NCBI GenBank assembly: GCA_037379345.1
Contig: CM074511.1
Coordinates: 69,632,862 to 69,696,861 of the forward strand
Source: Perna viridis
Taxonomy: Eukaryota
Reading direction: 5' to 3'
DNA length: 64,000 nt
Numbering within the stretch: position 1 is the stretch's first letter; every line of letters starts with the position of its first letter. The notes below the pieces were generated by a model. The model was not told where the DNA came from, made no database searches, and saw only the letters and a list, made by a program, of their open reading frames with translations. The position numbers were made by a program, and so were the translations under genes. Of the stretch, positions 3,641-64,000 are shown piece after piece.

Positions 3641-5027
3641 CATTATACCTTTATTGTCTAAATAGTCCAATATGCTATGCCAATATCAATGTGGATGTAG
3701 GATTTTTGTGTGTTATTAATTTGATTTATTTTACTCTAATTTGAAAAAAGAAGTATTTTATTGAAAGAGAAAGAAATTCCAAAAACTACTTTAAATGATT
3801 AAGTAGCAGTCTTTGTAAAAATCATTCAAATTGTGTAATATGTAATACACCCCTTAAAAATTGGTGCACATATTTATTTTTGTTATTAAGTTGTTTTATA
3901 GATCAATATGATGAAAAGTATAATTATTCAATCCAATTTGTCTGCTCTTAGGAGGTAATCAACATTGATAATCCAATTTTTTTATTATATTTTAGTGTCA
4001 TATGCAGAGTTATCTCCCTTAATTTTGATTTCTACAGCATATTGTATATAATTTTTATTTCTTAATTATATTAGAACAAGGGTTATATAAAGCCAGATGT
4101 TAACTTCTGTTTATGAAGGCTCATATTTTTCATGATTCTTAGTTGGAGTGCTACTTAAGACCATAAAAATCAATGGATAAGGCAAATCCTTATTATAGCA
4201 GTCTGACTATTAGTTTCTTGCTATTGTAGTTGAATTATGCAATATTTTTTAATTTAATGGGTTTTTTTTTATTGTTGATGTGTCATCATTCACTGTTTTC
4301 TTTATTTGTACTGGCATCAGACTAAATTACATCTTCCTTATAATTACATTCTGTAATATTTTACTATTGTATGTTTATATTGGCAAAATCTTGTCCTTCT
4401 GTTTTGCCAAAATAAATTTTGTGTAAATCTTCAGGCATCATTTTGGAAGATTAACCTGCCAAGTTAAATGAATTAAAATTTCAAGTTCATTGCTTTTTGT
4501 ACCCTCTGTGTAGAACTATTAAATTACAGGACTTAACTAGCCTGTGAGTTTTGCATGACTAATTAGAAATTCAAGTCAAATCCATTCATATATAATAATG
4601 TAATAAATAATGCTAGCCTATTTATTGCATAAAGGAACTGGTCATGAACCATGTAATTTTTGGTAAACATTGCAGTATACGAAGTTATAAATGTGTATTA
4701 TTTTATGTCATAGTTATTCACTTGTAACAGTAAAGTTTGATTGTATAAATACATCCTAACACTGGATGATTGACACTTCAGATAACTTTTATATAAACTT
4801 TAGATGGTTTATTTATTACCAGGTACTTGATATATACTATTTTATCAAGTCGCTTACATCGCTGTTTGTTGTGTTGTATGATAGTATTAACAGTAGTTAA
4901 TGTGCTAACAAGACAAATACATGTAGTTATAAGTAAGTTTTGTTTACCAGTCAATTCAGAAAGTTACAGATATTTCCAGAAATACTGACCACAATCTCAG
5001 TACCAGTAATGTGTTTCATAAGTATTG

Positions 5028-5149
5028 ATGATTTGGGAGTTATCGTCTTATCTCCATTGTGTCAGCTGTTTCCATCTAACTAGGTGCTGGTTTATTTTAA
5101 GGACAGCATCATTTGTAACCACGGCAATAGTCTCAGGTATAACTCTCAG
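5028..5149 (+). CDS. Candidate alternative first exon (or 48/66/84-nt cassette exon) of PDE4 splicing to the 35721 exon
   Basis: ATG 5028 (in-frame TAA at 5019) is open to a consensus donor CAG|GTAAGT at 5150, ending in phase 2, which matches the 35721 exon. Encodes MIWELSSYLHCVSCFHLTRCWFILRTASFVTTAIVSGITL(R). No homology evidence. Confidence 0.4.
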
Positions 5150-5636
5150 GTAAGTTTGTATTAACATTTATTATTAATTAATTAGTTACCATGATAATAT
5201 TTTTTTTAATTTAGTAGAATTTTAGCGCAAGCAATAGTTAAGTAAACTTATGAAACAGAGCTTTACAACCCAATTGTATATTTAATGGACTGGATATACT
5301 TCACCAATACGGAACTGATGTTTTTATTACTTGTATATTGAAGGTAAATTGCATCAAAAATATGACCAAGAAAATGAACAGTTTAATAATTTTACAGTCT
5401 GTATGAAGACAAGGTTTATGAGAAGGTCTAGGTCAATTCACTCGTTATTCTTATGTACTGACTAATTGTTACACTGTTGATAAATTTGTTCAATATATCC
5501 ATTTGATTAATAATTTAAAGGATTGATTTTTATCTCAGAGTTCTGTAATTAAGTAGTTAACATGTTTATCAAGGAAATACCTGCACACAAATTAGTTACA
5601 CATATACTTTATCCACTTAGTGACTTCCTTCCAGAC

Positions 5637-6700
5637 CTGTTCTGTCAGATGAAACATTCTAGTAGTATCCCTTGACCACCCTGAGTTCTGTCTTATGAAA
5701 CATTCTGGTAGTATCCATAAGATTGACCTAAATTCTGTCAAGTTAAATATTCTGGTAGTATCCATTGATTGACCTAAATTCTGTCAAGTTAAATATTCTG
5801 GTAGTATGCGTTCACTGTTCTGAGTTCTGGTGGGTGAAACATTCTGGTAGTATCCAATAACTGATGTGAGTTCTGTCAGGTGAAACATTCTGGTAGTATC
5901 CATCGACTGACCTGAGTTCTGTCAGGTGAAACATTCTGGTACTATACCTTTGACTGGCCTGAGTTTTTTCAGGTGAAACATTCTGGTAGTATCCAATGAC
6001 TGACCCGAGTTCTATGTGGTAAAACATTCTTGTAGTATCCAATTACTGACATGAGTTCTGTCACATGAAACATTCTTGTAGTATCCAATGACTGACATGA
6101 GTTCTGTCACATGAAACATTCTTGTAGTATCCAATGACTGACATGAGTTCTGTCACGTGAAACATTCTTGAAGTATCCAATGACTTACTCAAGCTCTGTC
6201 AGATGAAACATTCTGGTAGTATCCATCGACTGACCTGAGTTCTGTCAGGTGAAACATTCTGGTACTATACCTTTGACTGGCCTGAGTTTTTTCAGGTGAA
6301 ACATTCTGGTAGTATCCAATGACTGACCCGAGTTCTATGTGGTAAAACATTCTTGTAGTATACAATTACTGACATGAGTTCTGTCACATGAAACATTCTG
6401 GTAGTATCCAATGACTGACATGAGTTCTGTCACATGAAACATTCTTGTAGTATCCAATGACTGACATGAGTTCTGTCACGTGAAACATTCTTGAAGTATC
6501 CAATGACTTACTCAAGCTCTGTCAGATGAAACATTTTGGTAGTATCCCTTGACTGGCCTGAGTTCTCTCAGTTGAAAGATTTTGGTAGTATCCCTTGACT
6601 GGCCTGAGTTCTCTCAGTTGAAAGATTTTGGTAGTATCCGTTGACTGGCCTGAGTTCTGTCAGCTGAAAAATTTTGGTATTATCCTTTGACTAGTCTCAG
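5637..6700. repeat. 46-bp minisatellite with a ~323-bp (7-unit) higher-order duplication
   Basis: Unit gagttctgtcaggtgaaacattctggtagtatccaatgactgacct; the variant order at 5881 repeats at 6204. Confidence 0.92.
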
Positions 6701-7095
6701 ATATTTTGGTTGTATCTGTTGGCTGGTCTGAGATATTTTGGTTGTATCTGTTGCTGTTCAGGGATATTTTGGTTGTATCTGTTGCTGTTCAGGGATATTT
6801 TGGTTGTATCTGTTGGCTGGTCAGGGATATTTTGGTTGTATCTGTTGGCTGGTCTGAAATATTTTGGTTGTATCCCTTGACTGGTCTGAGATGTTTTGGT
6901 TGTATCTGTTGGCTGGTCTGAGATATTTTGGTTGTATCTGTTGCTGTTCAGGGATATTTTGGTTGTATCTGTTGGCTGGTCTGAGATATTTTGGTTGTAT
7001 CTGTTGGGTTGTCTGAGATATTTTGGTTGTATTGCTTGACTTGTCTGAAATGTTTTGGCTGGTCTTAAGTATTTTGGTTGTATCTGTTGGCTGAG
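6698..7095. repeat. 30-32-bp minisatellite related to the adjacent 46-mer
   Basis: Unit gagatattttggttgtatctgttggctggtct. Confidence 0.9.
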
Positions 7096-7535
7096 TTTGG
7101 AAACTTTTCCTAGAAAAAGTTGTTATATATGTTACTAATTGTAACACTTGTTGTTCATATCTACAATACACAAATATTTCAGTTGTAAACATTGCAAGGT
7201 AAACATACTACAAAAAAAGGTTAGATCTATAAATAGTAAGATGCAAGCTATATTAGTAATTTTTGTGATGATAATGTCAGAGCTAATGTTTTATAGAAGT
7301 CTAATGAGGTGTGATGCAGGAAATAATAAGTGTTTTATTATCAGTTTGCATGTCAATTCTGCAACTATTGTCAACAATACTTTCCACAAAGGGAACAAAA
7401 AAATGACCAGTATTACACACTTACATGTTTTAAATAAATCAGATTTATTATACAATGTAGTATCTAGCCAGAATGTGGACTATAATGAGACTGTGGACCA
7501 ACTGTTTAGAAATTTCTTTAGAGGTGATGTGAGCA

Positions 7536-16854: not shown

Positions 16855-19670
16855 GTATTTACAGCCTGTTGGCCGAGTCTGTAGAGTATTAAAGCCTGTT
16901 GGCCGAGTCCGTAGAGTATTACAGCCTGTTTGCCAGGGTCGGTAGAGTATTACGGCCTGTTAGCCAGGGTCTGTAGTGTATTACAGTCTGTTGCCCCAGG
17001 GTCTGTAGAGTATTACAGCCTGTTTCCCCAGGGTCTGTAGAGTATTACAGCCTGTTGCCCCAGGGTCTGTAGAGTATTACAGCCTGTTTCCCCAGGGTCT
17101 GTAGAGTATTACAGCCTGTTGCCCTAGGGTCTGTAGGGTATTACGGCCTGTTAGCCAGGGTCTGTAGTGTATTACAGTCTGTTGCCCCAGGGTCTGTAGA
17201 GTATTACAGCCTGTTTCCCCAGGGTCTGTAGAGTATAACAGCTTGTTTCCCCAGGGTCTGTAGAGTATTACAGCTTGTAGCCCCAGGGTCTGTAGTATAT
17301 TACAGCCTGTTGCCCTAGGGTCTGTAGAGTATTACAGCCTGTTGCCCTAGGGTCTGTAGAGTATTACAGCCTGTTAGCCAGGGTCTGTAGTGTATTACAG
17401 TCTGTTGCCCCAGGGTCTGTAGAGTATTACAGCCTGTTTCCCCAGGGTCTGTAGAGTATTACAGTCTGTTGCCCCAGGGTCTGTAGAGTATTACAGCCTG
17501 TTTCCCCAGGGTCTGTAGAGTATTACAGCTTGTTTCCCCAGGGTCTGTAGAGTATTACAGCTTGTAGCCCCAGGGTCTGTAGAGTATTACAGCCTGTTGC
17601 CCTAGGGTCTGTAGAGTATTACAGCCTGTTGCCCTAGGGTCTGTAGAGTATTACAGCTTGTAGCCCCAGGGTCTGTAGAGTATTACAGCTTGTAGCCCCA
17701 GGGTCTGTAGAGTATTACAGTCTGTTGCCCCAGGTTCTGTAGAGTATTACAGCTTGTAGCCCCAGGGTCTGTAGAGTATTACAGCCTGTTTCCCCAGGGT
17801 CTGTAGAGTATTACAGCCTGTTGCTCTAGGGTCTGTAGAGTATTACAGCCTGTTGCTCCAGGGTCTGTAGAGTATTACAGCCTGTTGCCCCAGGGTCTGT
17901 AGAGTATTTACAGCCTGTTGCCCCAGGGTCTGTAGAGTATTACAGCCTGTTGCCCCAGGGTCTGTAGAGTATTTACAGCCTGTTGCCCCAGGGTCTGTAG
18001 AGTATTACAGCCTGTTGCCCTAGGGTCTGTAGAGTATTTACAGCCTGTTGCCCCAGGGTCTGTAGAGTATTACAGCCTGTTGCCCTAGGGTCTGTAGAGT
18101 ATTACAGTCTGTTGCCCCAGGGTCTGTAGAGTATTACAGCCTGTTGCCCTAGGGTCTGTAGAGTATTTACAGCCTGTTGCCCCAGGGTCTGTAGAGTATT
18201 ACAGCCAGTTGCCCTAGGGTCTGTAGAGTATTACAGTCTGTTGCCCCAGGGTCTGTAGTGTATTACAGTCTGTTGCCCCAGGGTCTGTAGTGTATTACAG
18301 CTTGTAGCCCCAGGGTCTGTAGAGTATTTACAGTCTGTTGCCCCAGGGTCTGTAGAGTATTACAGCCTGTTGCTCTAGGGTCGGTAGAGTATTACAGTCT
18401 GTTGCCCCAGGGTCTGTAGAGTATTACAGCTGTTGCCCCAGGGTCTGTAGTGTATTACAGCCTGTTGCTCTAGGGTCTGTAGTGTATTACAGCCTGTTGC
18501 CCCAGGGTCTGTAGAGTATTACAGCCTGTTGCCCCAGGGTCTGTAGAGTATTTACAGCCTGTTGCCCTAGGGTCTGTAGAGTATTACAGTCTGTTGCCCC
18601 AGGGTCTGTAGTGTATTACAGTCTGTTGCCCCAGGGTCTGTATTGTATTACAGCTTGTAGCCCCAGGGTCTGTAGAGTATTTACAGTCTGTTGCCCCAGG
18701 GTCTGTAGAGTATTACAGCCTGTTGCTCTAGGGTCGGTAGAGTATTACAGTCTGTTGCCCCAGGGTCTGTAGTGTATTACAGTCTGTTGCCCCAGGGTCT
18801 GTAGTGTATTACAGCTTGTAGCCCCAGGGTCTGTAGAGTATTTACAGTCTGTTGCCCCAGGGTCTGTAGAGTATTACAGCCTGTTGCTCTAGGGTCGGTA
18901 GAGTATTACAGTCTGTTGCCCCAGGGTCTGTAGAGTATTACAGTCTGTTGCCCCAGGGTCTGTAGAGTATTACAGTATGTTGCCCCAGGGTCTGTAGAGT
19001 ATTACAGCCTGTTGCTCTAGGGTCTGTAGAGTATTACAGCTTGTAGTCCCAGGGTCTGTAGAGTATTACAGCTTGTAGTCCCAGGGTCTGTAGAGTATTA
19101 CAGCCTGTTGCTCTAGGGTCTGTAGAGTATTACAGCCTGTTGCCCTAGGGTCTGTAGAGTATTACAGCCTGTTGCTCTAGGGTCTGTAGAGTATTACAGC
19201 CTGTTTCCCTAGGGTCTGTAGAGTATTACAGCTTGTTTCCCCAGGGTCTGTAGAGTATTACAGCCTGTTGCCCTAGGGTCTGTAGAGTATTACAGCCTGT
19301 TGCTCTAGGGTCTGTAGAGTATTACAGCCTGTTGCCCTAGGGTCTGTAGAGTATTACAGTCTGTTGCCCCAGGGTCTGTAGAGTATTACAGCCTGTTGCT
19401 CTAGGGTCTGTAGTGTATTACAGCCTGTTGCCCTAGGGTCTGTAGAGTATTACAGCCTGTTGCCCTAGGGTCTGTAGAGTATTACAGCCTGTTGCCCCAG
19501 GGTCTGTAGAGTATTACAGCCTGTTGCCCCAGGGTCTGTAGAGTATTACAGCTTGTAGCCCCAGGGTCTGTAGAGTATTACAGCCTGTTGCCCAGGATTT
19601 GTAGAGTATTACAGCCTGTTGTCTAGGGTCTGTAGAGTATTACAGCCTGTTGCCCGAGGGTCTGTAGAGT
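16855..19670. repeat. 32-bp satellite array, roughly 88 copies
   Basis: Unit gtattacagcctgttgccccagggtctgtaga with a few recurring variants. Confidence 0.97.
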
Positions 19671-19993
19671 AAGTCTTTGTTGTCTTCTTTCATGGGTTTT
19701 TGATAGTGGTCAGTCTGTCTGTAGCCCTGGTGTCTGTATAGTAAGTCTTATCTTCTGTTATGGGTTTGTAGTAGTGGTCAGTCTGTCTGTAGCCCCGGTG
19801 TCTGTAGAGTAAGTCTTTCTTATCTTCTGTTATGGATTTGTAGTAGTGGTCAGTCTGTCTGTAGCCCTGGTGTCTGTAAAGTAAGTTTTATCTTCTGTGA
19901 TGGGTTTGTAGTAGTGGTCAGTCTGTCTGTAGGCCTGGTGTCTGTGGAGTAAGTCTTATCTTCTGTTATGGGTTTGTGGTAGTGGTCAGTCTG
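19660..19993. repeat. 68-72-bp minisatellite, about 5 copies
   Basis: Unit gtaagtcttatcttctgttatgggtttgtagtagtggtcagtctgtctgtagccctggtgtctgtaga. Confidence 0.88.
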
Positions 19994-20863
19994 ACCATGT
20001 CAGGTCGTCTTAAAAATACCAACAAGATTTTCTAATTTTGGTAAGATAATGGTTTTCATAGTTTGTGTTTAGTAATGATTGTTGGTAACTTGTTTTGTTT
20101 ACTTGCTCATTTTATCTTCATTTAATCCATTCATCTGTAATGTTTCAGTAAAAGCTTTCATGAACTACATATAATCTGGAACTCATTTGAGAATTTACTT
20201 CTACACTATTGTTTAATTTTCTATAAAATTTGCAAACTGAAGAATGATAAGTTTTTTTTTCATAGTTGTGTAATTCATAATTGCAGAACATGTGAATCCA
20301 AGGGGAAACTTTACTGCACAACATGAGTAATCAGTCTGAAAAATGGAATCAAGATTTCTATTAAATGCAATCATTTTACATTTTTGTCTAAGCTATAAGG
20401 GTATGAATGCCCCATCAATCTTTCTTTTTCCTCAAACAAATGGCATTAATATTCAAGTTCCAATATTCGGTCAAATGAAGAGTTTTTATTAGTCATGCAA
20501 ACATGAACACTATCTCTAACCTGAAACTATAAAAGTCATGTTTAATCTCAGCTTTAGTAAGTCTTCCTCAAGAGATAATTATAACTGATTGAGTCATTTG
20601 AACAAACTTTTGATCCTGTAAGGATGTTAAATTACTTATTGTTTATAACATGTGTCTTAATCTGTCTAAACCTTTTGACAGTTGGTTAATCCTTCCATAT
20701 GTTAGCAGTTTTCATCATCTAGGATAACCCTAGTTTTCATAATTGTAATGGATGTGAGATACGAGTATTTGCCATTCTAGGACCATGTAAGGTAATCTGA
20801 TGTAGAATACCAGTATCTTTTATCCTAATGCTGTGCTTCAATCAGTGTAAAAATGTGGTTTGA

Positions 20864-23800
20864 TCTGTGAAACCCAGGACCATGTTTTCACTGATGTAAT
20901 CTGGTGTGTGATGCCAATATCTGTGAAACCCAGGACTATATTTTCACTGATGAAATCTGGTGTGTGATATTAGTATCTTTGAAACCCAGGACCATACCCA
21001 GGACTATATTTCCACTGATGAAATCTGGTGTGTGATACCAGTATCTTTGAAACCCAGGACCATATTTTCACTGATGTAATCTGGTGTGTGATACCAATAT
21101 CTGTGAAACCCAGGACCATGTTTTCAGTGATGTAATCTGGTGTGTGATACCAATATCTGTGAAACCCAGGACCATGTTTTCACTGATGTAATCTGGTGTG
21201 TGATACCAATATCTGTGAAACCCAGGACCATGTTTTCAGTGATGTAATCTGGTGTGTGATACCAATATCTGTGAAACCCAGGACCATGTTTTCAGTGATG
21301 TAATCTGGTGTGTGATACCAATATCTGTGAAACCCAGGACCATGTTTTCAGTGATGTAATCTGGTGTGTGATACCAATATCTGTGAAACCCAGGACCATG
21401 TTTTCAGTGATGTAATCTGGTGTGTGATACCATTATCTGTGAAACCCAGGACCATGTTTTCAGTGATGTAATCTGGTGTGTGATACCAATATCTGTGAAA
21501 CCCAGGACCATGTTTTCAGTGATGTAATCTGGTGTGTGATACCAATATCTGTGAAACCCAGGACCATGTTTTCACTGATGTAATCTGGTGTGTGATACCA
21601 ATATCTGTGAAACCCAGGACCATGTTTTCACTGATGTAATCTGGTGTGTGATACCAATATCTGTGAAACCCAGGACCATGTTTTCACTGATGTAATCTGG
21701 TGTGTGATACCAATATCTGTGAAACCCAGGACCATGTTTTCACTGATGTAATCTGGTGTGTGATACCAATATCTGTGAAACCCAGGACCATGTTTTCACT
21801 GATGTAATCTGGTGTGTGATACCAATATCTGTGAAACCCAGGACCATGTTTTCACTGATGTAATCTGGTGTGTGATACCAGTATCTGTGAAACCCAGGAC
21901 CATGTTTTCACTGATGTAATCTGGTGTGTGATACCAGTATCTGTGAAACCCAGGACCATGTTTTTAGTGATGTAATCTGGTGTGTGATACCAATATCTGT
22001 GAAACCCAGGACCATGTTTTTAGTGATGTAATCTGGTGTGTGATACCAATATCTGTGAAACCCAGGACCATGTTTTCACTGATGTAATCTGGTGTGTGAT
22101 ACCAGTATCTGTGAAACCCAGGACCATGTTTTCACTGATGTAATCTGGTGTGTGATACCAATATCTGTGAAACCCAGGACCATGTTTTCAGTGATGTAAT
22201 CTGGTGTGTGATACCAATATCTGTGAAACCCAGGACCATGTTTTCAGTGATGTAATCTGGTGTGTGATACCAATATCTGTGAAACCCAGGACCATGTTTT
22301 CAGTGATGTAATCTGGTGTGTGATACCAATATCTGTGAAACCCAGGACCATGTTTTTAGTGATGTAATCTGGTGTGTGATACCAATATCTGTGAAACCCA
22401 GGACCATGTTTTCAGTGATGTAATCTGGTGTGTGATACCAATATCTGTGAAACCCAGGACCATGTTTTCAGTGATGTAATCTGGTGTGTGATACCAATAT
22501 CTGTGAAATCCAGGACCATGTTTTCACTGATGTAATCTGGTGTGTGATACCAATATCTGTGAAACCCAGGACCATGTTTTCAGTGATGTAATCTGGTGTG
22601 TGATACCAATATCTGTGAAACCCAGGACCATATTTTCAGTGATGTAATCTGGTGTGTGATACCAATATCTGTGAAACCCAGGACCATATTTTCAGTGATG
22701 TAATCTGGTGTGTGATACCAATATCTGTGAAACCCAGGACCATGTTTTCAGTGATGTAATCTGGTGTGTGATACCAATATCTGTGAAACCCAGGACCATG
22801 TTTTCAGTGATGTAATCTGGTGTGTGATACCAATATCTGTGAAACCCAGGACCATATTTTCACTGATGTAATCTGGTGTGTGATACCAATATCTGTGAAA
22901 CCCAGGACCATGTTTTCAGTGATGTAATCTGGTGTGTGATACCAATATCTGTGAAACCCAGGACCATATTTTCACTGATGTAATCTGGTGTGTGATACCA
23001 ATATCTGTGAAACCCAGGACCATATTTTCACTGATGTAATCTGGTGTGTGATACCAATATCTGTGAAACCCAGGACCATGTTTTCACTGATGTAATCTGG
23101 TGTGTGATACCAGTATCTTTGAAACCCAGGACCATGTTTTCACTGATGTAATCTGGTGTGTGATACCAGTATCTGTGAAACCCAGGACCATGTTTTCACT
23201 GATGTAATCTGGTGTGTGATACCAATATCTGTGAAACCCAGGACCATGTTTTCAGTGATGTAATCTGGTGTGTGATACCAATATCTGTGAAACCCAGGAC
23301 CATGTTTTCACTGATGTAATCTGGTGTGTGATACCAATATCTGTGAAACCCAGGACCATGTTTTCAGTGATGTAATCTGGTGTGTGATACCAATATCTGT
23401 GAAACCCAGGACCATGTTTTCAGTGATGTAATCTGGTGTGTGATACCAATATCTGTGAAACCCAGGACCATGTTTTCAGTGATGTAATCTGGTGTGTGAT
23501 ACCAGTATCTGTGAAACCCAGGACCATGTTTTCAGTGATGTAATCTGGTGTGTGATACCAATATCTGTGAAACCCAGGACCATGTTTTCAGTGATGTAAT
23601 CTGGTGTGTGATACCAATATCTGTGAAACCCAGGACCATGTTTTCACTGATGTAATCTGGTGTGTGATACCAATATCTGTGAAACCCAGGACCATGTTTT
23701 CACTGATGTAATCTGGTGTGTGATACCAATATCTGTGAAACCCAGGACCATGTTTTCACTGATGTAATCTGGTGTGTGATACCAATATCTGTGAAACCCA

Positions 23801-24264
23801 GGACCATGTTTTCACTGATGTAATCTGGTGTGTGATACCAGTATCTGTGAAACCCAGGACCATGTTTTCACTGATGTAATCTGGTGTGTGATACCAATAT
23901 CTGTGAAACCCAGGACCATGTTTTCACTGATGTAATCTGGTGTGTGATACCAATATCTGTGAAACCCAGGACCATGTTTTCACTGATGTAATCTGGTGTG
24001 TGATACCAGTATCTGTGAAACCCAGGACCATGTTTTCAGTGATGTAATCTGGTGTGTGATACCAATATCTGTGAAACCCAGGACCATGTTTTTAGTGATG
24101 TAATCTGGTGTGTGATACCAATATCTGTGAAACCCAGGACCATGTTTTTAGTGATGTAATCTGGTGTGTGATACCAGTATCTGTGAAACCCAGGACCATG
24201 TTTTCAGTGATGTAATCTGGTGTGTGATACCAGTATCTGTGAAACCCAGGACCATGTTTTCACT
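20864..24264. repeat. 56-bp satellite array, roughly 60 near-identical copies
   Basis: Unit tctgtgaaacccaggaccatgttttca(c/g)tgatgtaatctggtgtgtgatacca(a/g)ta; degenerate units on both flanks. Confidence 0.97.
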
Positions 24265-28835: not shown

Positions 28836-29708
28836 GCATTTGTCGTCTTCTTTTTGCATTGACTTACATTTATCAGTGTATGAGTTGTTAGATTATTATT
28901 TTCTTAGGTCATTTTTTTCTTTATCAATAAATTGAGGAAAATTTAACAATGAGAGATGGAAGCCTAAATGCTGCTAAGGCTAACATCATGTTTTAATCAA
29001 TAACACCTATTTACACCTGTAATTGTTAGGTAGAAAACAGGTATTTTTGTCTTACCTATGGAGGTAAAATGGCTTTGTTTATGTAAGCTATATACAAGTG
29101 TTGTATAAACATTTGTATAACAGTTTGATTCCATTATGGTTCTAAAACAGAAGGTGGTAAACCTTTGATATTGTAATGAGTTCAGCAATATAATAGTATG
29201 ACAAATATCTTTTTTTTCAAGTTTCTTTGTCATATAATATCTCCATAGTTTGTGTTAAGCTTCCAGCAATGTTTTGAAGAAATAATATTCTAATTATTCA
29301 TTTCAATGGTTTTCAAATTCTTTTTCAGGACAATTCTGGATGAGATTAATGTGAGGATATTGACAGATACTCTTGTCATGTGATTTACTAGTGTGTTCAC
29401 TTACTTTCTAATATGAATAATAATAATCCATTACATAGAGTATTGAGTACAAGTGTACTAAGAATTCCACGATCTAGGTATTCTTTTTGGCAAAGGTAAG
29501 AGTTTAAGTGATTAGTGTTAATTTTTTTCTTATTTGTACAAAGGTAGATAACTCTAAAATGAATTCTGCACTAATAAGTAATTTGTTATTGCACAATTGT
29601 AGACTTTTTTATAATCATGAGAAAATAAATAATTACATCTTAGATAGAAAATAAATATTAGAATATTAAATAAAAAAAATAAGAATTATGGTTTTGATTG
29701 TTATTGGT

Positions 29709-29870: not shown

Positions 29871-31634
29871 TAAGTTATTCGGATTGTTTAGAATTGTGAT
29901 GGTAGATTATCTGTTTAAGGAGCAATATATCAGTTAATGTACTCATGATACATAACAGAGTGAAATTACCTGTCAACAACTAAATATAACATAAGGTTAA
30001 TAACAATTGAAACCAAAATAAAAGTGTTTGATGAAATCTAAATACAAGGCCATTATCACAAAATTACAACAAATTAATACTCACAGATTGTCTAAAGTAA
30101 TGGCTAAAACGAACACAAACACTTAATGGACAATCTATATTCTCATGTTTATCCATTTTCATACCCCCTGCTTTCAAAGGTGGGCATGTATAGTAATACG
30201 TATGTCTGTTCCTCTGTAAGAACTTTTGTCCATATTTAGGTCAAGCATAGTTTTACCCATCTCTTATCCCCAACTCCTCCTACATCTTTGTTACATATTC
30301 CTGTTGTGCACCTACTAATTATGAATATAGGCTACCAATCTTTTTTTTTCTGTAACTCCTGCGTTACTGAATTTTCACTGAAGATGGTCACCCCTTATTT
30401 AGGATTTTGATGTGAATGTTTTTAGGAGGTTCCTATAGCATTTATGATTAAAGGATACCCATCTAAATGCACATACATGCACTATAAAGAACGAGTACCG
30501 GGATATCCTTCTTGTTTTTTTTTTCTCCAACATCACTTAATGACATTAATGACACTTTCACAGAATACCTCTTAAATATTGAAGATATACTACTCTTATT
30601 ACAGTTTTTGAATTGTTTTTTTATTTTTATTGCTCCAGAACATGGGTTTTGCCCTTTTTTGAATTCTTCCTTTGAATGGAATTAAATTTTGAAAATACCA
30701 AAAATCTATATTGCATATTCCCAGTGTGCACCTCTGATTTTAAATTTTGATCCAAATCTATTTCGAGGTCATCTAATGGGGGATTGGAAGCATCTATTGA
30801 GTGATTTTTGCTTACATTTTTCTTTTGATATGACAATCGATGATTGTGCACCTCCTTTTTTTTCTTGATCAAGGCCTTTTTTTCTTTCTTTTAAATCGTT
30901 TACACTTCTTTTTTTTTTTTTTTCAACAACTCATCACACATGTAATGATGCATCTAATCAAATTTTGTGTGACTTGGTAATGATTAAAACTATATTGTGT
31001 AATTGGGGTGATATCTGGGGTATGATAGATAGATGGTAATGTTAATTTAAGTGTGAAAAAAATTATTTTCTTGAAATGATGTGGAGATTTTCATCCATGG
31101 TGATGCAAATTTCAAACCTTTACTACCAATATTCATTACCGTATTTGTAGTAATCCCACAATGCAACAGTCATTTACCCGATTGGTCAGATCTATCAGTA
31201 TTAACATTTATAGTCATGAACTGAGATCACATGTGTACTTGACCTGTTTAAGGTTTTTACACAACAAGAGAAAATATGAATTTTAAAACCTGCATTTATA
31301 TGACTGCAAATTGGTGGTCATATAATAGAATGGCACTGTTGGCAGGGGCGCTGGCATCTGTAAACAATTTAATGTCCAGAGAATAAGTGTATAGGTATAT
31401 CCATATTGAATACTCAGACAAGGTGCCATAACACAAAAGGCTCAGTTTGATTTTAGGGTTGTGGCTTGAAAGGTTTAGAAATTAGGGACCAAAAAGTTAT
31501 GAGAAACAAGCATTTTTATGATGTCCAAATGAGAGTATGAGATTAAACATAGAGAATTATTATGGTTAAAACAAAATTTAGTCACATTCTCATAGAAAAA
31601 AACCTGATTTGCTTTCACAGACAGAAAATTGATA

Positions 31635-32050
31635 TAATTATACTCTTTGTAACAAAGTTGTGGAGGATATAATATTTTTGATCCATCAGTCCGTCATTAG
31701 ATTTCCGGACTTTTTTTACTGAATGCTTGCAGATATTGAGCTTATTTTTGGTATGTGATTTTACCATGTTGAGTTACAAGCCAAGTTAACATTTCATTCC
31801 ACTTTCCTGATTTTTCCAGAAAAAAACAGGCCTAGAACAAATTTCATAAAAATAACAGTTTTACTGAATATTTTCTCAATAATTTCAGATGTTGAGCTGA
31901 TTTTAGGTATGTGAGTCTACAATGTACCATGATGAGTCACAGGTCAAGTTAATGTTTCATTGTGATTTTCTATGAATTAAGGCCCTTTGAGTTTTCTTTC
32001 TTTTTTAAAAAAAAAAACTTTTTTGAGAGTCTATTATGTTGATGGGTGTG
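31635..32050 (+). mobile_element. Degenerate HINE-like element with two ~155-bp internal repeats
   Basis: ttatac...gtccgtc type start; repeated cagat(a/g)ttgagct.atttt.ggtatgtga at about 31730 and 31886. Confidence 0.4.
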
Positions 32051-35828: not shown

Positions 35829-36444
35829 GTAAGATATATGGTATTGTAGAACAAACATAACATATGTTTCAAAAACTTGATATATCTGCTGTCAAAGAAC
35901 ACATTATTGAAGTATCAATTCTATTGCTACTTTTAATTATGAAAACTACAAAACACCTAATAAGAATTTATACGGTTGTAAGTCTTAGCCAAGATTTCTG
36001 CTACCACCCAACCAATGCCCCACATTATTCAGTAGTAAGTTAGGATATTAACATTTTGTCACCAGATTTTGATTGCTCTGTTCATGGGATATTATACTCA
36101 ACCTGTTACATTTTATTTATTTCCTTTTAAATTAAACTGCATATGATTAACCTGGTCTAAAATCCTGTCATGTTCTCTCACCTTGACCTAGAATATGGAT
36201 TATAATATCTAACATCACTGGTTTAAACATGACTGTAGTTAAATCATTGCTTTTAATATGACTTGCATCCTTTACTCGATTATTAAGTGGACATTGAGTC
36301 GAATATTTTGAATAAATTTGTCATGGCTGTTATCAGCATTAGTAGTAATATCAATTATATTTTCAAGCTATACATCGTAAATAAATGTGTTGGTTTTTGT
36401 CAATATTTTTTTTTTTTCTGCAGTCAAGAAGTAAGTTCCTCTAA

Positions 36445-37096
36445 GTCAGGCCATATACAAGTCTGTAGGACCATTACATATACTGGTCTGTTCAATACTA
36501 AATTGGACTGTATACCAGTCTAAAGGACTGAAGTGTATACTGGCATGGTCAATACTAAATAGTACCATATACCAGTCTATAGGAATGTAGTGTATATTGG
36601 CCTGGTCAGTACTAAATAGGACCATATTTCAGTCTATAGGACTTATTTGTATCTGGGCTGGTCAATATTAGACCCTATATCATTCTGTAGGACTACAATG
36701 TATACTGGTACTGACCTGGTCAATATCAAACACTGTATCGGTCTGTAGGACTACCTTGTATACCAGTACTGGCCTGGTCAATATTAGATCCTATATCAGC
36801 CTGTAGGACTACAGTGTATAGCGGTACTGACATGGTCAGTATTAAACACTATATCAGTCTGTAGGACTACAGTGTATACAGGTACTGGCCTGGTCAGTAT
36901 TAGACCCTATATCAGTCTGTAGGGCTACCGTGTATAGTGGTACTGGCCTAGTCAATATTGAACACTATATCAGTCTGTAGGACTACCTTGTATACTGGTA
37001 CTGGCCTGGTCAATATTAGACCCTATATCAGTCTGTAGGGCTACTGTGTTTAGTGGTACTGGCCTGGTCAATATTTGACACATATCAGTCTGTAGG
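36445..37096. repeat. ~58-bp minisatellite
   Basis: Unit cagtctgtaggactacagtgtatactggtactggcctggtcaatattagaccctatat. Confidence 0.88.
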
Positions 37097-41945: not shown

Positions 41946-42694
41946 TGATTTTTTTCAAATGGTAGAAAGATAGTCCCCTGACCATCATTGATGTCCGATT
42001 TCATTTTGTCAGTATGTATTGTGACAGTTTAGTTCAAAACAAATTAGTTATTTCACATATATTAAATATTTGAAATTACACTGAAAAATTTGGAAAAAAA
42101 TTTTACAAGTCTAAACAGCTTGTTTCTGGGTACCAGATTCTCTATACCAATTCTGTTGATAAGTGATTTGATGAAAAGTAGTTCTCTGTCAGTGTTCTGT
42201 TCTATGATACATTGTGATTGAGGGAAACAAATGAGGTTCTAATGGTTCAAATGACGTCTAGAATCCTGAAGAGATGATATACAGTTCCGAGTTCTATCAC
42301 TTGGAAAATATCCGTTGGATGAACACTTTACTGAGGCCTTGGGGTAAATTGGAATTGATGATTGCACAGACAACTTGAGATTTAAGCACGGAGAATAAAA
42401 CAATAACTGTTCGCCTGAATCGATTTTCTCTGGCAGCAGATAACATTTCCAAGTAAAAAGTTATGATTGATTTTTGATAATGAAAAAATTGATGATTAGA
42501 GTAGAGAATGAGTATTGGCATTTGACAGCTCTCTTAGATTATAGAGGACTCAATCAATACAAATAATACCATTCTAGTCTATGTTTATGTAAGCTTCCCA
42601 AGATTTCATGTTTCTATTTTAAGTACTCTTGCTCAATCATCAAGTAGAAGAAATTACAAAACACTAGCGTTTTACTGGAAGGTTTTATTAAGTT

Positions 42695-42711
42695 GGAAAT
42701 TCCTGACGTCA
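42695..42711. promoter_or_regulatory. Perfect CRE palindrome TGACGTCA (42704-42711) abutting a Rel/NF-kB-like GGAAATTCC (42695-42703)
   Basis: The motifs are read directly; function is inferred. A near-CRE TGACGTCT lies at 42252-42259. Confidence 0.45.
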
Positions 42712-44298
42712 TTCCTTTCTCTAAGGTCTCAGAATGAATCATTTGTAAAGTAAATTGGTTTTTCCTCAAACCTTTGATCTGGTATCGTATTTTCTTGAAA
42801 ACTGGATCTTAAAAATGCAAATGTTTCTATTTCTGATGACGGCTGTAGTCTACTTGAACTTTTGTCCTCTCCAGAAATATTTTATGAAGGAATCTTTCTA
42901 TTGATTTTAACCTAACTGTCATACATACTCTGACTTGTCAGTCCGGAGCAGTAAATACAAACTTATGTCAGATTCACTATATGTGGTGCCTTTTGTGAGC
43001 AAGTTCTTATGCAAGTAAGAATTGCACCACTTAATGTGTATGTGTTATTGTGCTTCTGTGACTAAGATATTTCTGACCTAATGCAAACATAAATCTTAAA
43101 AAAACTAAGATCAAAGTCCCTTTTTGGTTGGAAAAAAAAACATGCCATGTGTTAAAGTGCCCTCTTCCCTGCACCTCAAGTTCCTTGTGTGAACTGCACT
43201 TTGAGTGTGACTGTTACTATTGTCCTCAGATATTGCATGCCCAGTGCATGTGTGTCCTGTACCTAATAGTGTTGCCTAACATGACTGCCCATTGCCTGTA
43301 TGAACTGTTCTTTGAGTCAGACTACCAATTGCCTGTAGGTAGTTTCACCTTTGTGTGTGATTAGTTCTGCCCACTGTGAGTATCTACTATAAACTGCCCT
43401 TTGAGTGTGACCGCCCATTGCTTGTAAGTATTGTCCCCTGTGGATAAGTGTCAAGTCACTGTAAGCACTCCCAAATTGTGTAAAGAAGTGTCCTATGTTT
43501 GTTACCCATTGCCTGTAAATATTCTCAATGTGCATGCCCATTGCCTTTATGCACTCTGTAAATGAATTTGTACTCTGTAATCTTAACTGTGTGATTGACT
43601 GGTTGCCCATTGATGTAAGTACTCCCTTCTTTGTGTGAGTGCTGATTGCCTGTGCCTTCTGTGATTGAGCACACAGACACTGTAAGTACTCCCAACTGTA
43701 TGTGGTTGCCCATTTTCTTTAGGTTGTGCCCTCTGTGTTCATGTTAATCATTGGAGAGAAGAGAAAAACAGTGTGTAGCTTTTAATTTATTTAGGAAGTG
43801 ATTATTTAAATTCCACTTAATTTTTACTTTGTATGTTAAGAAAGTGTTTTTTTTTTTCTTCATCTCTGATAAAATCATAACATTCTGAATCAATCGTGAC
43901 CTGATTTTCTTGATATTTAACCATATGTTCCCTGTATGAAGTATCTTTGTGAGTGTGGTATTGTTGTACTAAATGTATACTGGTACTCAATTTACTGATA
44001 CATTTGCTCTCTAAAGTTCAGGCCATTCTTGGCTTAGAAATGGTCACAGTTGTATTGGCTGAGACAGAAAGTGATGTTTCCACCAAGAAGAAGAGATATG
44101 TTGTTTTGTAGTAGTACCTTGGTATACATTACTGTTTCCCTTTACTCTATGTTGAATGGGAGGTCGATATATCTAATGTACATAATTTTACATGTTTAAT
44201 TGAATCCTTGTTGCAATCAACGGAAACAGCTGCTGCATAATGTTGATACAATATTATCGTGTAGCCATGATGGTATACCACGTCTTATAGAGGAAGCT

Positions 44299-44336
44299 AT
44301 GTACTACGAATGGGGTGTCGGTTTGGCAAATATGAG
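44299..44336 (+). CDS. Candidate alternative first exon of a UCR1-less PDE4 isoform
   Basis: MYYEWGVGLANM followed by AG|GTGTAT (phase 2, fits the 45780 exon); an overlapping GTATGT at 44339 would be phase 1 (fits 49703). Six CpGs in 44161-44340 against a CpG-poor background. Confidence 0.4.
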
Positions 44337-45779: not shown

Positions 45780-45853
45780 ATCGAGAGGTGGCCCTTCTGG
45801 TTCACACAGTCATGGTAAATCTTCCTCAGGACAGGAAAACAATAAAGTGCCAG
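45780..45853 (+). CDS. PDE4: PDE4 exon: linker region 1 (LR1) between UCR1 and UCR2
   Basis: Acceptor tttttattttttag, donor CAG|GTAACT at 45854; 74 nt, phase 2 to phase 1, exactly the change needed to join the flanking exons. Encodes (R)SRGGPSGSHSHGKSSSGQENNKVP with no stop; low-complexity linker as expected for LR1. Confidence 0.85.
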
Positions 45854-48216: not shown

Positions 48217-49702
48217 TAGTTAATTTTGTATGTGCTGGATGTTTAAGAAAAACAAGGATTATCTCCCTTGTACCAATTTATATTTGAAGTACAACTTTTC
48301 CTTTTTTGGTGAGGAAGCAAAAATTCATTTTTTCTTTAAAATATGGTTTGTGTGATCCTTAAACCTGCACTTCCAAAGATTTTGGTTTATATATAACAAG
48401 TTTTTGATTAAATGAGAGAAAAAGGCAGCCATTATGGCATGATGGTTTATAGTAAAATTCTTTGATCTGTTCTTTATTGAACCACAGTAGAAGATTTTAA
48501 TTTTTTTGCACTGAATTTTTTTATTGATAACCTGCATGGCTTTCTGATTGAAAAAAATGATGATTTTAGATACTAAATCATTTTATGATGGAGTACTTTC
48601 AGGTCTTAATACTTACTTCTGAAGTATGTCAAATAACTTAGTCATTTTGAAGGAAACAGAATAAAAAATTGCTCTACTTTTGTGGCTAGATGAATCTATA
48701 CGCGAGCTGAAGCACGTTTGTCAAGTCATTATTTAACAAGGACTGTAAAACAATATGTATTAATTACTGCTTCTTATGACATTGGACTCTGTGAGAAATA
48801 AACAGATTTAATGAGTTTGACAGGAAACAAGTCTTGGTAAATCATACACCTTGTGTGTTTGATGTAGCAGTCCTTAAATACATGGTCCTTCTAATCAATG
48901 AAGTCATATGTAATGTAAATCTTTGTGTATCCCTTGTTCTGACTTCTTGTTCTTATGTCAGCCTACTTATTCATTTACTATAATGTTTACTACAAGCATA
49001 AATTTACATTGTTCAGGTCAAAAGGTCATATGTTGTAGAAACTTCTCTGGTTTCCGGGCTAAATTTATCATTTACAAAATTTAGAATGCATACAAATAAA
49101 CAGTGTAATGTTTTTATTGTCATTTACTAGACCTTTCCTGATAGAGACAACAGAGAAGAGGACCACCAGTACAAATCTATTTGAAAAATTAATCGTGTCG
49201 GAAATATCTAATAAATTTCTTAAAAAGTGCTTATTTTGTGTATTTTAAGAAGTAAGCTTTCCAAGTAATTATGTTTACTACTGGTACACTTCCTTCCTAA
49301 ACCCCAGGCTTAATTTGTTCGGGGAAAACAATCCTCTGTGTATTTCTGTTGGCTTGAAATGGAGGCCAATTGAGTACTTATTGCTGTCAAATTAGGCAAC
49401 TTGGCTACTTCTAATTTATACCAGTCTACAGTTTAATTAGTGCTTCATGACGGTGTTCAAGTTCCAATATCTTGAAATAAAGGCTTACAGCACATCTAAA
49501 GCAATGGCATATGTTCTATACCTCTTTAACATTGAAAATCATCAGAGTTATTATATAAATGACATGTACTTATGATATACAGCTAATTAATGTTTTGTTT
49601 CTAACTATCCTGATCATAGTAAAACATACCCACTGACATTTACCTTGATTGATATGTTGAAGATGTTCAGGATTGTTTTCATCTTGTCATATTTCTTTGC
49701 AG

Positions 49703-49815
49703 ATGAAAAATATTCACAAATGGCCCTGGATACCTTAGAGGAATTAGATTGGTGTTTAGACCAATTAGAAACCATTCAGACACATCGGTCAGTCAGTGAC
49801 ATGGCATCAAGCAAG
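49703..49815 (+). CDS. PDE4: PDE4 exon: N-terminal half of UCR2
   Basis: Acceptor atttctttgcag, donor AAG|GTAACT at 49816; 113 nt, phase 1 to 0. Encodes (D)[37 protein letters not shown], the PDE4 [14 protein letters not shown] motif. Confidence 0.97.
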
Positions 49816-50474: not shown

Positions 50475-50568
50475 TTCAAACGAATGCTAAATAGGGAGCT
50501 AAGCCATTTTGCAGAATCTAGTAAATCTGGGAACCAGATTGCAGAATATATATGTAACACATATTTAG
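50475..50568 (+). CDS. PDE4: PDE4 exon: C-terminal half of UCR2
   Basis: Acceptor ttttttctttgtag, donor G|GTGAGT at 50569; 94 nt, phase 0 to 1. Encodes [31 protein letters not shown], the PDE4 [13 protein letters not shown] motif. Confidence 0.97.
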
Positions 50569-60991: not shown

Positions 60992-60999
60992 TGACGTCA
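60992..60999. promoter_or_regulatory. Perfect CRE palindrome TGACGTCA
   Basis: Read directly; lies about 0.9 kb upstream of the candidate TATA box at 61922. Confidence 0.4.
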
Positions 61000-61879
61000 G
61001 AGAATAATTAAAACTGTGTTTTCTCTTAGACATGCATTTAAACATAACAATTTGTAAAATAAGATAGATTTCCATACTTCATCATATGCTGTCTATATTT
61101 CCTATCCTACTTGCTCTAACTAAGGTATATATTGTACTACTGAAAACAACTTATTTTTGCAAGCAATTTATTTTTACTAATTTCATCAGTAAGAAAAGAT
61201 TGTGAAAACTAATTACCATGATAATGGTACCTTCATTATGGAAAATTTATGAAACAAAAATAAATACAGTAGATCATTTTCTTTTAGAACAATATTACAG
61301 CAGTAAAATATACAGACTTAGCCATGCACTCATTCATAATCTGTAAATCTTTGTATTCTCTTTTTTTTTTTTTTCTTTTCTTTTTTTTTTTTGCTAATGG
61401 AGGCGTTCTACAACATACATCACACAAAAGACTGATGCCAGTTTGGACTGGATTTAAATCATGAGCCATGAATGTCATCTTCCACAGGAAATAAGTTTCT
61501 AATACTGTATACTTGAGTAGAAAAATATGTGTACTTTAACACAGTAATGTGATTTTAAAAAGAAACACCTATTCCACCAAAGAGTTTTGTTTTTTATATC
61601 CATGGTTCATGACATTAACATTTGATTGATTAGAACTTTTAACATAAAAATTGTAGTAAAAAGTTTGGCCCAGAAACATAGTATCCATATAAACTTGATT
61701 TCATAAGTACAACTCTTTCACTTATTCATGTTTAAATGTGACTGTTCTGTTTATTTCTTTTAACACCATTAGATAGCTATAAAATTCATTACTATAATCA
61801 ATATAAGTAATTGTCACAGTGGTTTTTTACCTTTGAGCTTAAAGCAGGTGAAAGGCCTTAATTACAGAGAACTTCCTTA

Positions 61880-61960
61880 CTGAGCATGCTCAGACTTCTG
61901 CTATAAGTATTATAGTAAACATATAAATCCATTCATACAGTCTGAAGTGATCATTAGGAT
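61880..61960 (+). promoter_or_regulatory. Candidate core promoter: 14-bp palindrome, TATA box, Inr-like element
   Basis: CTGAGCATGCTCAG (61880-61893, perfect palindrome resembling the NRF1 motif), TATAAAT at 61922, and TCATT with its A at 61953, 31 nt after the TATA start. An alternative Inr TCAGTT lies at 61972. Confidence 0.4.
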
Positions 61961-62068
61961 GAATAACACATTCAGTTTAAAACGGATGTTTGTAATACTT
62001 AAAGTTTAAATTACAGTTTTCAAAAATTATAGTGGAAGTGATATTTTGTTATATTTTGTTGCGTCATT

Positions 62069-62156
62069 ATGGTCCTGATGCATTCTGTGATTACTTTATC
62101 AAGTTATATCCATTCTGATGGAATCAATTTCAAAACTCAACTCATTCAGGAATCTT
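62069..62156 (+). CDS. Candidate alternative first exon of a PDE4 isoform lacking UCR1 and UCR2
   Basis: ATG 62069 (in-frame TGA at 62039) encodes MVLMHSVITLSSYIHSDGINFKTQLIQES, then 1 nt and donor GTAAGT at 62157. Phase 1 equals the phase left by exon 50475-50568. Preceded by TATA/Inr-like motifs. Confidence 0.4.
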
Positions 62157-64000
62157 GTAAGTTTTCTTTTTTTATTGTTTCTGTTTGCATGCTTTATCTA
62201 ACAGTAGTTCCCCCCTTTTGATGCAACACATTTTTCTCTATTAAGATATGTATTATGTGGATTTTGTATTAACAAAAAAAAAAGAAAACTTATCAAAAAT
62301 GGGGTTTTTTTTTATTGCTACTTCTTATTCATGCTAAATAATACTGCATGGACTATAAAAAAAGATAAACATAAGCATGTTGACAAACAGTTCTTTTAAA
62401 TTAAGGATGCTGATCTTGCCTTCAAAGTTTTGTTTTTTGGTTTTTGTGGCATAGTAATAAATGATATTTTGTACATTACAAACCCATACTTCTCTCAGAG
62501 TTATTATTGGGCTAAGAATGGTCATGATGGTGCTACTTATACAAATAATTGAATTTACTGACTTCTAGTGTGACAACATAAAATTGTTGTGACAATCACT
62601 ATCATTGGGACTGTCATTGACGCAAGTCTTTATCTCATCTAACAGGTGGACAGTCCTCGAATATTGATTACTGACCCTTAGTTTCACTAAGTACATAATA
62701 TAAAAGGTTTTTTGTTGATTGAAAAGGTTTTTGATTTTGTTTTGTAATGAAAGGAGTAAGTTAACAAAACAGATGTTTTTTAATCTGCGACTTAATTGTA
62801 TACAAACAATTAAGCTTATTTTAAATATAGCTGCTGTGAAATGTGCTTGATACCTCAGATCATGATAGAGAAAAATTGTCAAAAAATGAGCTGAATCCTG
62901 GTCTGTGTATAAATGTTTTTGTTTTCAATAAAATTTCTGCCTACTGCCTCTGTTCACTGAGGACAGATTGATTTAGGAAATAAAGTTTCCATCTGCTTTT
63001 CTTGTCTATCTTTAAACATAAAAATAATTTCATATCAAAAATCTCTCTGGGAGGTTGTTTTCAACCATTTATAATCATAATATTTTTCTTGTAAACAGAA
63101 TGTGATTGTGTACAAAATATTTTCCTGACATGTTTTAGGATAAGATTTGGTGTTTATTTGGCACAGACCATATAGGCAGTGAAGTATGTTCGTTATGAAC
63201 TCTTTTTTTAGGTTTCCCTTTGTGGAAGAAATATGAATATTTATCTGATTACATTAAAACTTGACAACTATATCCAAAGAACTGTAGTTAGATTGGTACA
63301 TCCTTTGATGTTAAAGTGCACATTGTTCTGAACTGTTAATGCGCTTTAAGTTTCCCTAATAATACTGTAATCTCAGGTAGCTACTTGTATTTTGTGAACT
63401 TTTTGTCCTTAAACAAGTAACAACGGTATCATTCAGGTTTCCTTATTCATCATCTTGCTGTACTTAAAATAAAACCTACAACTATTGCAGTTGTAAAATG
63501 TGCAGTTTTCTGATGAGAACATGAATTAGTCATTGTAAAGTTTGATTTTTACTTGACCCAGAGCAGTTGTACTATGTAGGTTTTTTTGTAGAGCTTTTCA
63601 GGTCTAAGTTAGACACTGCTTTACAGGAAGTGGTAAACCAGGTAATCAGTAAGGTGACAATTTTATGACGTGTAGGACATGTAATAGAAGATAGTCTTAC
63701 ATACAGGAAACTATTTAATCCTTGACAGATTATGATTGTTAAACATACCAGTTAAATGTATTATAGCAGAAAGACTTGTTTCATTTAGGATCACATATAC
63801 CCCAACACCTACTGATAATTTGATTGTAATGGTTTATTTTGAGAATTACTAACCTGATTTAATCTTACTACTTAGTATTCCTACCAAATTTTATGTTCCA
63901 TACATGGTCATATCTTTTCTATTTTAATTTAATGACTTTGACATCAAAATCTAAGTATTTTTCTACTCTAATTTTGCTACATAAAAATTAATGACAAACA

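Follow-up and report, generated by a model that had tools for sequence, protein, structure and literature searches.

PDE4 isoforms determine the place and the duration of cAMP signals. The stretch analyzed here, 64,000 nucleotides of Perna viridis (G000:C1:69632862-69696861, plus strand, of a 723-Mb assembly; below, the window), holds the regulatory half (UCR1-UCR2) of a single PDE4 gene of the dunce type, from a mytilid-like bivalve. UCR1 of this gene is split by an intron of 34 kb, and two real alternative 5' coding exons probably feed the exon that encodes the C-terminal helix of UCR1, UCR1(C). One of them is a small exon at 29413-29495; the other lengthens the UCR1(C) exon at its 5' end, with translation from the ATG at 35599 and transcription from a probable promoter in a patch of retained CpGs (the CpG oasis). 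By the same reading, the remaining ATGs proposed as internal starts are most likely chance open reading frames (ORFs), and the full cAMP response elements (CREs) of the window, TGACGTCA, have no demonstrated link to any start.

The first-pass annotation had listed ATGs at 5028, 35599, 44299, 49654 and 62069, and all of them are indeed present, each in phase with the next conserved exon. Only the one at 35599 exceeds chance. It opens a coding 5' extension of the UCR1(C) exon (35599-35720, plus strand) and is, as had been proposed, an internal start in frame through the acceptor 35720/35721 that drops the half of UCR1 with the PKA site; the start is conserved. The frame is open for 89 codons upstream of this acceptor, compared to 0, 8, 11 and 38 codons at the four other acceptors, and at least 89 open codons are found at 0.4% of 10155 control AG/frame sites. 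An open frame, conservation and an Aplysia primer (see below) all point to this extension.

Protein searches were run exon by exon or ORF by ORF. The 119-residue ORF running into UCR1(C), searched against 1.84 billion representatives, retrieved 264 proteins at E up to 0.001. In the best matches, with 61-81% identity, the alignment begins at query residues 41-45, where the Met of 35599 lies, and several of them start exactly at this Met (e.g. residues 1-63 of P0007); a word search added closer relatives (P0151, 99%; P0152, 91%). The UCR1(C) core is present in all 209 stored proteins, while the segments upstream of it differ. The long-form segment with the canonical PKA site RRESF is found in 76 proteins, the N-terminus MQK[ILF]..[YF]L[TRS]P.F..NG in 36, and the LSTSVLRI motif in 8 (10, if two insect variants are included). 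In 89 proteins the upstream part is unrelated junk resembling a pyrimidine tract, which serves as a natural control.

The MQK-type family consists of ORFs or proteins from other species, among them Plakobranchus P0014 and Lottia P0011. A Met occupies the aligned position in 35 of its 36 members, and 22 begin exactly there. The N-terminal motif is followed by a basic or Ser-rich stretch, and a short hydrophobic segment, commonly F(S/T)xxF, precedes (S/C)RHA(E/D)DL, the core starting 29-239 residues after the Met. The window peptide itself has a moderately hydrophobic N-terminus, the basic stretch KNKRDRDK...RR and the RNN motif, and carries RRFS 12 residues upstream of UCR1(C). Because the extension reads through the acceptor with a conserved N-terminus, the acceptor region of the long form doubles as codons in the 35599 isoform. 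Another in-frame ATG, at 35551, lies 16 codons upstream of 35599, and five proteins (P0153, P0154, P0156, P0158, P0159) have a Met-started extension of 13-23 residues that ends in ...KPV before MQK; judging from these sequences, the true initiation codon (35551 or 35599) may differ among lineages.

The PDE4 of Aplysia kurodai has been cloned as long, short and supershort forms, which shape serotonin-driven synaptic facilitation, and the short form reaches the plasma membrane by means of its hydrophobic N-terminus, a basic domain and an interaction between UCR1 and UCR2 (PMC4580752). It is written S(N-UCR1-2) in PMC6827574. Table 1 of PMC6567041 lists its primers: the one in sense orientation codes for MQKLNF, and the antisense primer 'N30' codes for RKSSTD. 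In P0010, the MQK segment has the first of these peptides at residues 1-6 and the second at residues 25-30. As they fall in the same N-terminal family, the 35599 isoform appears to be orthologous, in the bivalve, to the short form cloned from Aplysia PDE4 (ApPDE4).

This likeness to ApPDE4 is one of sequence features. In both the short form and the window peptide, MQK is followed by hydrophobic residues and ...NG, then by a basic stretch and ...SRHA(E/D)DLIVTPFAQ; the RRESF segment is absent, and UCR1(C) and UCR2 are kept. The sea slug Plakobranchus protein P0014 shares the MQK start. Still, there are differences. The linker from the Met to the core has 41 residues in the bivalve, compared to 47-74 in MQKLNF-type proteins, including that of Plakobranchus; the bivalve has NGC where MQKLNF-type proteins have NGK, NGR or NGW; and RRFS at the junction of the bivalve peptide distinguishes it from the ApPDE4 short form.

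The second 5' exon, MNNNNPLHRVLSTSVLRIPRSRYSFWQ, absent from the first-pass list, occupies 29413-29495 on the plus strand, is single-copy, and ends in the donor AAG|GTAAGA in phase 2. It was identified by tblastn of 329 stored proteins against the window and L001, the locus that holds the next exon beyond the window. Eight hits with E below 0.05 fell outside the known exons, and six of these landed on 29404-29496: Aplysia californica P0029 (2.7e-7), Candidula P0176 (1.3e-7) and P0180 (3.0e-6), the crayfish Cherax P0197 (0.001), the beetle Leptinotarsa P0208 (0.002), and P0041 (0.013). Of the other two, one, from P0040, was marginal (12.8 kb, E 0.047), and one, from P0272, was a longer alignment that covers the exon at 49.7 kb. 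When the exon is joined to 35721, the product reads ...FWQR-HADDL, the same as in gastropod proteins.

NCBI gene models of gastropods and arthropods include isoforms of this type, which share the motif and have an identical junction, ...FW(Q/E/H)(R/K) and then H(A/G)EDL; like the window exon, they skip the RRESF half of UCR1. Variants of the LSTSVLRI motif are present in ant and bee models (Lasius P0198, Frieseomelitta P0205). The position of the motif differs: in the window exon, 7 residues separate the Met from the HRV...LSTSVLRI block, compared to 31-139 residues before the block in P0197, P0198, P0205 and P0041. The ATG at 29413 has a stop 7 codons upstream, and the exon could be the first one or follow others. 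No CpG signal was observed at 29413-29495. From these sequence comparisons, 29413-29495 appears to be a real conserved alternative 5' coding exon of molluscs and arthropods, and its N-terminus would be the second and older one.

The LSTSVLRI and MQK N-termini share their junction, and therefore the split inside UCR1 appears to be a recurrent point of entry, used by alternative 5' exons of several lineages as far as the compared sequences indicate. Two further N-terminal segments join UCR1(C) there: one, which recurs in P0043, P0084, P0146, P0199, P0202 and P0204, reads (R/I)(L/K)E(V/A)AE(T/N)T...SERAS(S), and the other, the dipteran segment of P0191 and P0203, reads MLNKN...FSIKS.SHGEDL.

The following arrangement would explain these observations. 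The split inside UCR1 would serve as the entry point for two alternative 5' ends. In one isoform, the small exon 29413-29495, with the motif LSTSVLRI...FWQ, would be spliced to 35721; in the other, the 5' extension of the UCR1(C) exon would be translated from the ATG at 35599 (or 35551), from a promoter in the 34.65-35.8 kb oasis. Both would lose the N-terminal half of UCR1 with RRESF and keep UCR1(C) with its RNN dimerization motif, all of UCR2 and the catalytic domain. Since UCR1(C) and UCR2 are kept and RRESF is lost, isoforms starting at 29413 or 35599 would be 'long-like' dimers without the canonical PKA activation site, not short forms of the mammalian type. By analogy with Aplysia, the 35599 N-terminus may act as a weak membrane anchor with a basic patch, placing the enzyme at the plasma membrane, and contacts between UCR1(C) and UCR2 could let this isoform oligomerize. 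RRFS may replace the lost PKA input in this species.

The proposed promoter lies in the region where CpG retention is the strongest. The window is AT-rich (about 34% G+C) and stripped of CpG: it contains 295 CpGs (4.6 per kb on average), the ratio of observed to expected (o/e) being 0.16 for CpG and 0.72 for GpC. Against this background, the single-copy oasis at 34650-35790 has 23 CpGs in about 1.14 kb with o/e of 0.55-1.1 (0.92 at 34901-35400), G+C being not raised. The count from -500 to +100 of 35599 is 13, the maximum of the window (top 0.1% of windows). Given such retention in a CpG-stripped gene body, the oasis is a probable promoter of the 35599 isoform, unmethylated in the germline. 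The local CpG retention that the first-pass annotation had noted near three candidates was thus observed at 35599, is ordinary at 5028 (5 CpGs, reached by 21% of windows) and marginal at 44299 (7, 5.8%).

Contigs of sequencing runs suggest transcription across the acceptor. Part of the stretch 35450-35720 is present in 20 of the 24 listed runs, 14 of which are contig sets of transcriptome size (65-105 million letters), guessed to be RNA; all sampled words of the stretch occur in 6 of these 14 sets, while 4 others from the studies concerned contain none. Four runs (X1, X2, X6 and X8), each of a different study, were aligned on 31001-37000. Spliced records of 4308, 3674 and 364 nt in these runs match exactly 35721-35828 and nothing else there. 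A separate contig, present in all four, starts at 35393, 35399, 35426 or 35431 and crosses the acceptor, so that the leader of the internal-start isoform would be transcribed from 35393-35598 (plus strand), with four out-of-frame upstream ATGs and the in-frame one at 35551. The read-through contigs end at 35677, 35727 or 35750; the last of these ends lies 30 bases past the acceptor, where, in our own reading, a branch of a 31-word graph would end. Their depths are 3.4-8.1, compared to 55-58 for the long spliced records of X1 and X6. X8 shows the opposite order, with a depth of 5.6 for the read-through contig and 3.0 for the spliced record, and its flanking unique bins of the intron are empty.

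The other four proposed starts are most likely chance ORFs. Candidate 1 (5028-5149, plus strand) is an ATG ORF of 40 codons, 122 nt, with the donor CAG|GTAAGT in phase 2, fitting 35721. Candidate 3 (44299-44336, plus strand) has 12 codons, 38 nt, and a weak donor, GAG|GTGTAT, in phase 2, fitting 45780. Candidate 4 (49654-49702, plus strand) is an in-frame ATG that precedes the UCR2 acceptor by 16 codons; its frame runs through 49702/49703, and its peptide is encoded by the polypyrimidine tract. Candidate 5 (62069-62156, plus strand) has 29 codons, 88 nt, and the donor CTT|GTAAGT in phase 1, fitting 64727 outside the window.

For starts of the spliced type, we counted, in the five introns and in 200 shuffles, the different donors to which an in-phase ATG ORF of 10 or more codons leads. 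There are 16 GT[AG]AG donors, compared to 16.8 +/- 4.1 in shuffles, and 224 donors of any GT[AG] type, compared to 294. The 44299 candidate belongs to the loosest class, with 50 observed and 46 expected in its intron. The strictest class (at least 25 codons, GTAAGT) takes in 5028, 62069 and two unlisted sites with donors at 26174 and 39544. Equally good in-phase candidates that had not been listed are found at 25996, 39459, 43528 and 61086 (61086-61188). For starts of the read-through type, an in-frame ATG precedes the first upstream stop in 19% of 9000 control AG/frame combinations, and at least 38 open codons, as at the 49.7 kb acceptor, are found at 6.2% of the 10155 control sites. A lesson for annotation is that in AT-rich introns of tens of kb an ATG with an open frame and a GT in phase has no discriminating power.

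Neither CpG content nor conservation distinguishes these candidates. In the -500..+100 interval, there are 4 CpGs at 49654 (31% of windows reach this) and 2 at 62069 (68%). An N-terminus of the 5028 type is found in none of the 209 UCR1(C)-containing proteins; the similarity of 5028 to P0013 and P0021 (E 0.68-3.8) was rejected as chance, both being intron read-through ORFs of two close relatives. The search with the 49.7 kb ORF gave 586 hits, 120 of which were listed; 16 of these, the own ORF and 15 others taken by rank or high query coverage, were read, and the remaining 104 were used in tblastn only. None of the 15 ORFs of other species that read through this acceptor shares the 49654 peptide, their upstream parts being unrelated and rich in F, L, S and Y. 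The tblastn search of the 329 proteins gave no hit at 5.0, 44.3 or 62.1 kb. The search with the exon downstream of 62069 yielded 12 hits, but these are all genomic ORFs without splicing, from which a spliced N-terminus cannot be read. A repeat origin of the candidates was rejected, as 5028, 44299, 62069, 29413, 35300-35830, 34600-35300 and 42150-42900 are all single-copy.

Full CREs, the perfect palindrome TGACGTCA, occur exactly twice in the window, as the first-pass annotation had reported: at 42704-42711, which is 1595 bases upstream of 44299, and at 60992-60999, which is 1077 bases upstream of 62069. Two sites compare with 0.21 expected, and 3 of 100 shuffles reach two. The CpG content is ordinary around the second site; the first one lies in the second CpG patch of the window (42.2-42.9 kb, or 42150-42900), which is unique in the genome and has 9 CpGs in the interval from -500 to +100 of 42704 (top 1.7% of windows). 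The patch also contains TGACGTCT at 42252 and TGACG at 42837, and is located 2.9-3.6 kb upstream of the linker exon; by its sequence, it may be a regulatory element. No TGACGTCA was found in the oasis (34.65-35.8 kb), which has half-sites only, at 34749, 35146 and 35572; by our estimate from the local CpG count, about 1.6 half-sites are expected, and the three observed are not significant.

The 42 kb patch leads to an alternative in which 35599 and 29413 are both real and the patch is, in addition, the promoter or enhancer of a transcript without UCR1, whose first exon would be non-coding or other than the 44299 ORF, with the Met inside the UCR2 exons. Such a transcript is unlikely, though the unique, CpG-retaining patch has three CRE-type sites within 586 bases, stands between UCR1 and the linker exon in the position of mammalian short-form promoters, and is followed by in-frame Mets in the UCR2 exon. 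No exon, transcript or conservation was seen there, and three CG-containing motifs are only mildly unexpected given the CpG density (about 6%, by our estimate). It is quite unlikely that the patch is a CREB-responsive internal promoter driving a transcript without UCR1 spliced to 45780, besides the two UCR1(C)-entry starts. If it were, molluscs would share the cAMP-induced short-form feedback with mammalian PDE4D1/D2 and PDE4B2, and the loop would predate the protostome-deuterostome split.

Several points weigh against the preferred reading of two UCR1(C)-entry exons, an oasis promoter and four chance ORFs. No run is on record as RNA, this status being guessed. Contigs cannot show true 5' ends, and no single contig in the four runs joins the 35599 extension to exon 45780. 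In X2 and X6, upstream intron contigs have depths of 2.5-4.6, and the read-through contigs (5.4-8.1) could be pre-mRNA. The four out-of-frame ATGs between the contig starts and 35599 are awkward for a simple leader. RRx[ST] is found near the junction in 7 of the 36 MQK-type proteins and [RK][RK]x[ST] in 16, so that the RRFS site is not a feature of the family. As for the remaining candidates, the strictest chance class has 4 members compared to 1.2 expected, a mild excess reached by 4% of shuffles. The negatives on 5028, 44299 and 62069 are weak, consisting of statistics and of protein sets that rarely contain such short exons, and contigs drop rare forms.

Another alternative would also fit the comparably deep intron contigs of X2 and X6, the four ATGs in the apparent leader and the inability of contigs to show starts. 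In it, the 35599 extension is conserved and coding but has no own promoter in the oasis: the transcript would start far upstream, splicing or retention of the intron would bring it to the extension, and the contigs would be pre-mRNA. We consider this very unlikely, since the contig starts fall within 38 bases in all four runs, with no overhanging letters, and the 400-600 bases upstream are empty in X1 and X8. Moreover, the strongest CpG retention of the window is exactly at 35599, and conservation starts at the Met, not upstream of it.

The full model of the first-pass annotation, in which all five sites are real first exons of isoforms graded from the loss of UCR1a, through the loss of UCR1 and the keeping of UCR2 only, to the loss of both UCRs, and the 44.3 and 62.1 kb promoters are switched by CREB via TGACGTCA in a cAMP feedback loop, is extremely improbable: the in-phase position of all five ATGs, the mild enrichment of TGACGTCA and of the strict GTAAGT class, and the origin of mammalian short forms from a cAMP-responsive intronic promoter (PMC10707411) speak for it, but four of the five have no conservation, tblastn support or CpG signal beyond the marginal one at 44299, a 12-codon ORF with a GTGTAT donor, and unlisted sites are equally good. 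A graded series down to an enzyme without UCRs is not borne out, four of its five rungs being no better than shuffled introns, and the CREB link of the ladder is not supported, as neither TGACGTCA site adjoins a supported exon. What does hold is the general idea of an invertebrate PDE4 whose internal alternative starts drop regulatory modules, and the interpretation is supported in this part.

The comparison with mammals shows both similarities and differences. As in the mammalian short and supershort forms (PDE4D1/D2, PDE4B2, PDE4A1), the 35599 isoform would have an internal intronic promoter and lose the UCR1 PKA site. According to PMC4371794, the short forms of mammals have no UCR1 at all and exist as monomers, and mammalian UCR1(C) carries the RNN cluster and a hydrophobic face needed for dimerization. 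Unlike these forms, the window isoform keeps UCR1(C) with the RNN motif. A protein that begins after UCR1, as is typical of mammalian short forms, was not found among the supported starts, both of which keep UCR1(C); the candidate of fitting position, 44299, is unsupported. Nor is there a full CRE in the probable internal promoter, the full sites adjoining no supported exon.

The PDE4 gene of Drosophila, dunce, has numerous promoters and variant N-termini. Like the gene studied here, this single PDE4 gene has very large 5' introns and several alternative first exons that join a common core.

Cloned Aplysia cDNAs and the gene models of several phyla already document the kind of isoform described here. 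New are the bivalve genomic anatomy, the link of the Aplysia short form to a probable CpG-retaining internal promoter and the mapping of the LSTSVLRI exon. The Aplysia short form is thereby placed on a genome, as a 5' extension of the UCR1(C) exon behind a CpG-retaining patch, conserved among the mollusc proteins compared. Isoforms that start at the UCR1 split would keep the dimerizing helix and drop the canonical PKA switch. These results are useful for annotation and for the choice of isoform-specific probes, and leave the picture of PDE4 biology unchanged. A limited literature search gave no paper on bivalve PDE4 isoforms, which is a thin basis for regarding them as unpublished.

The remaining anatomy of the gene is that of a PDE4: PDEase_I is present in the same gene, together with the UCR1 and UCR2 modules and the RRESF PKA site. 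The exon of the UCR1 N-terminal half (1096-1278, plus strand), defined by its translation (FDVENG...MQSE) and splice sites, contains RRESF at 1190 within the segment at 1187-1243. It is nearly identical to the long form of Mytilus galloprovincialis (P0167, a fragment), which is the closest named protein to the gene. The UCR1(C) exon (35721-35828, plus strand), which includes the RNN motif, has exact edges in spliced contigs of several kb; the Pfam PDE4_UCR match (PF18100) begins in it, with profile positions 1-26. The linker (LR1) exon, (R)SRGGPSGSHSHGKSSSGQENNKVP, at 45780-45853 (plus strand), follows from splice sites and spliced contigs and is fixed by the X2 and X6 contigs, in which the 30 letters after 35828 are exactly 45780-45809. 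The first and second UCR2 exons (49703-49815 and 50475-50568, plus strand) match PF18100 positions 51-87 and 88-118, the match exceeding the cut-off on each of the three window exons. The next exon begins at 64727, 727 bases beyond the window in L001, and the catalytic exons are located at 69.8-72 kb in coordinates continued from the window. PDEase_I (PF00233) matches G000:C1:69702668-69704382, 5.8-7.5 kb past the window, the L001 exon scoring 102.5 bits.

The introns are rich in minisatellites and dispersed repeats. The UCR1 intron contains two large minisatellites, at 16859-19671 (32 bases, 88 copies, 91% match) and at 20863-24262 (56 bases, 60.5 copies, 97% match), which cause the G+C and skew bumps at 16-24 kb; at least 20 more arrays with units of 31-70 bases are spread across the window. 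A dispersed repeat of about 120 bases at 32677-32794, resembling a short interspersed element or a miniature inverted-repeat transposable element, has at least 1187 copies in the genome at first look. Forty scored copies are 84-96% alike (39 of them 92-96%), and its summed depth is 24,000-109,000 in all four runs, with varied flanks. Rfam and tRNA scans gave no match, including for this repeat. Other dispersed families are found at 34080-34320 (at least 252 first-look copies) and 31630-31800 (at least 1224). Extra exons at 31.4-31.8, 32.68-32.79 and 34.1-34.3 kb, suggested by RNA coverage, were rejected as dispersed repeats.

A further PDEase_I domain, which is complete (profile positions 1-237, 246 bits), lies outside the window, at G000:C11:28716170-28716859 on the minus strand. 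Its frame of 438 residues has no stops, and it is either an intronless phosphodiesterase gene or a retrocopy.

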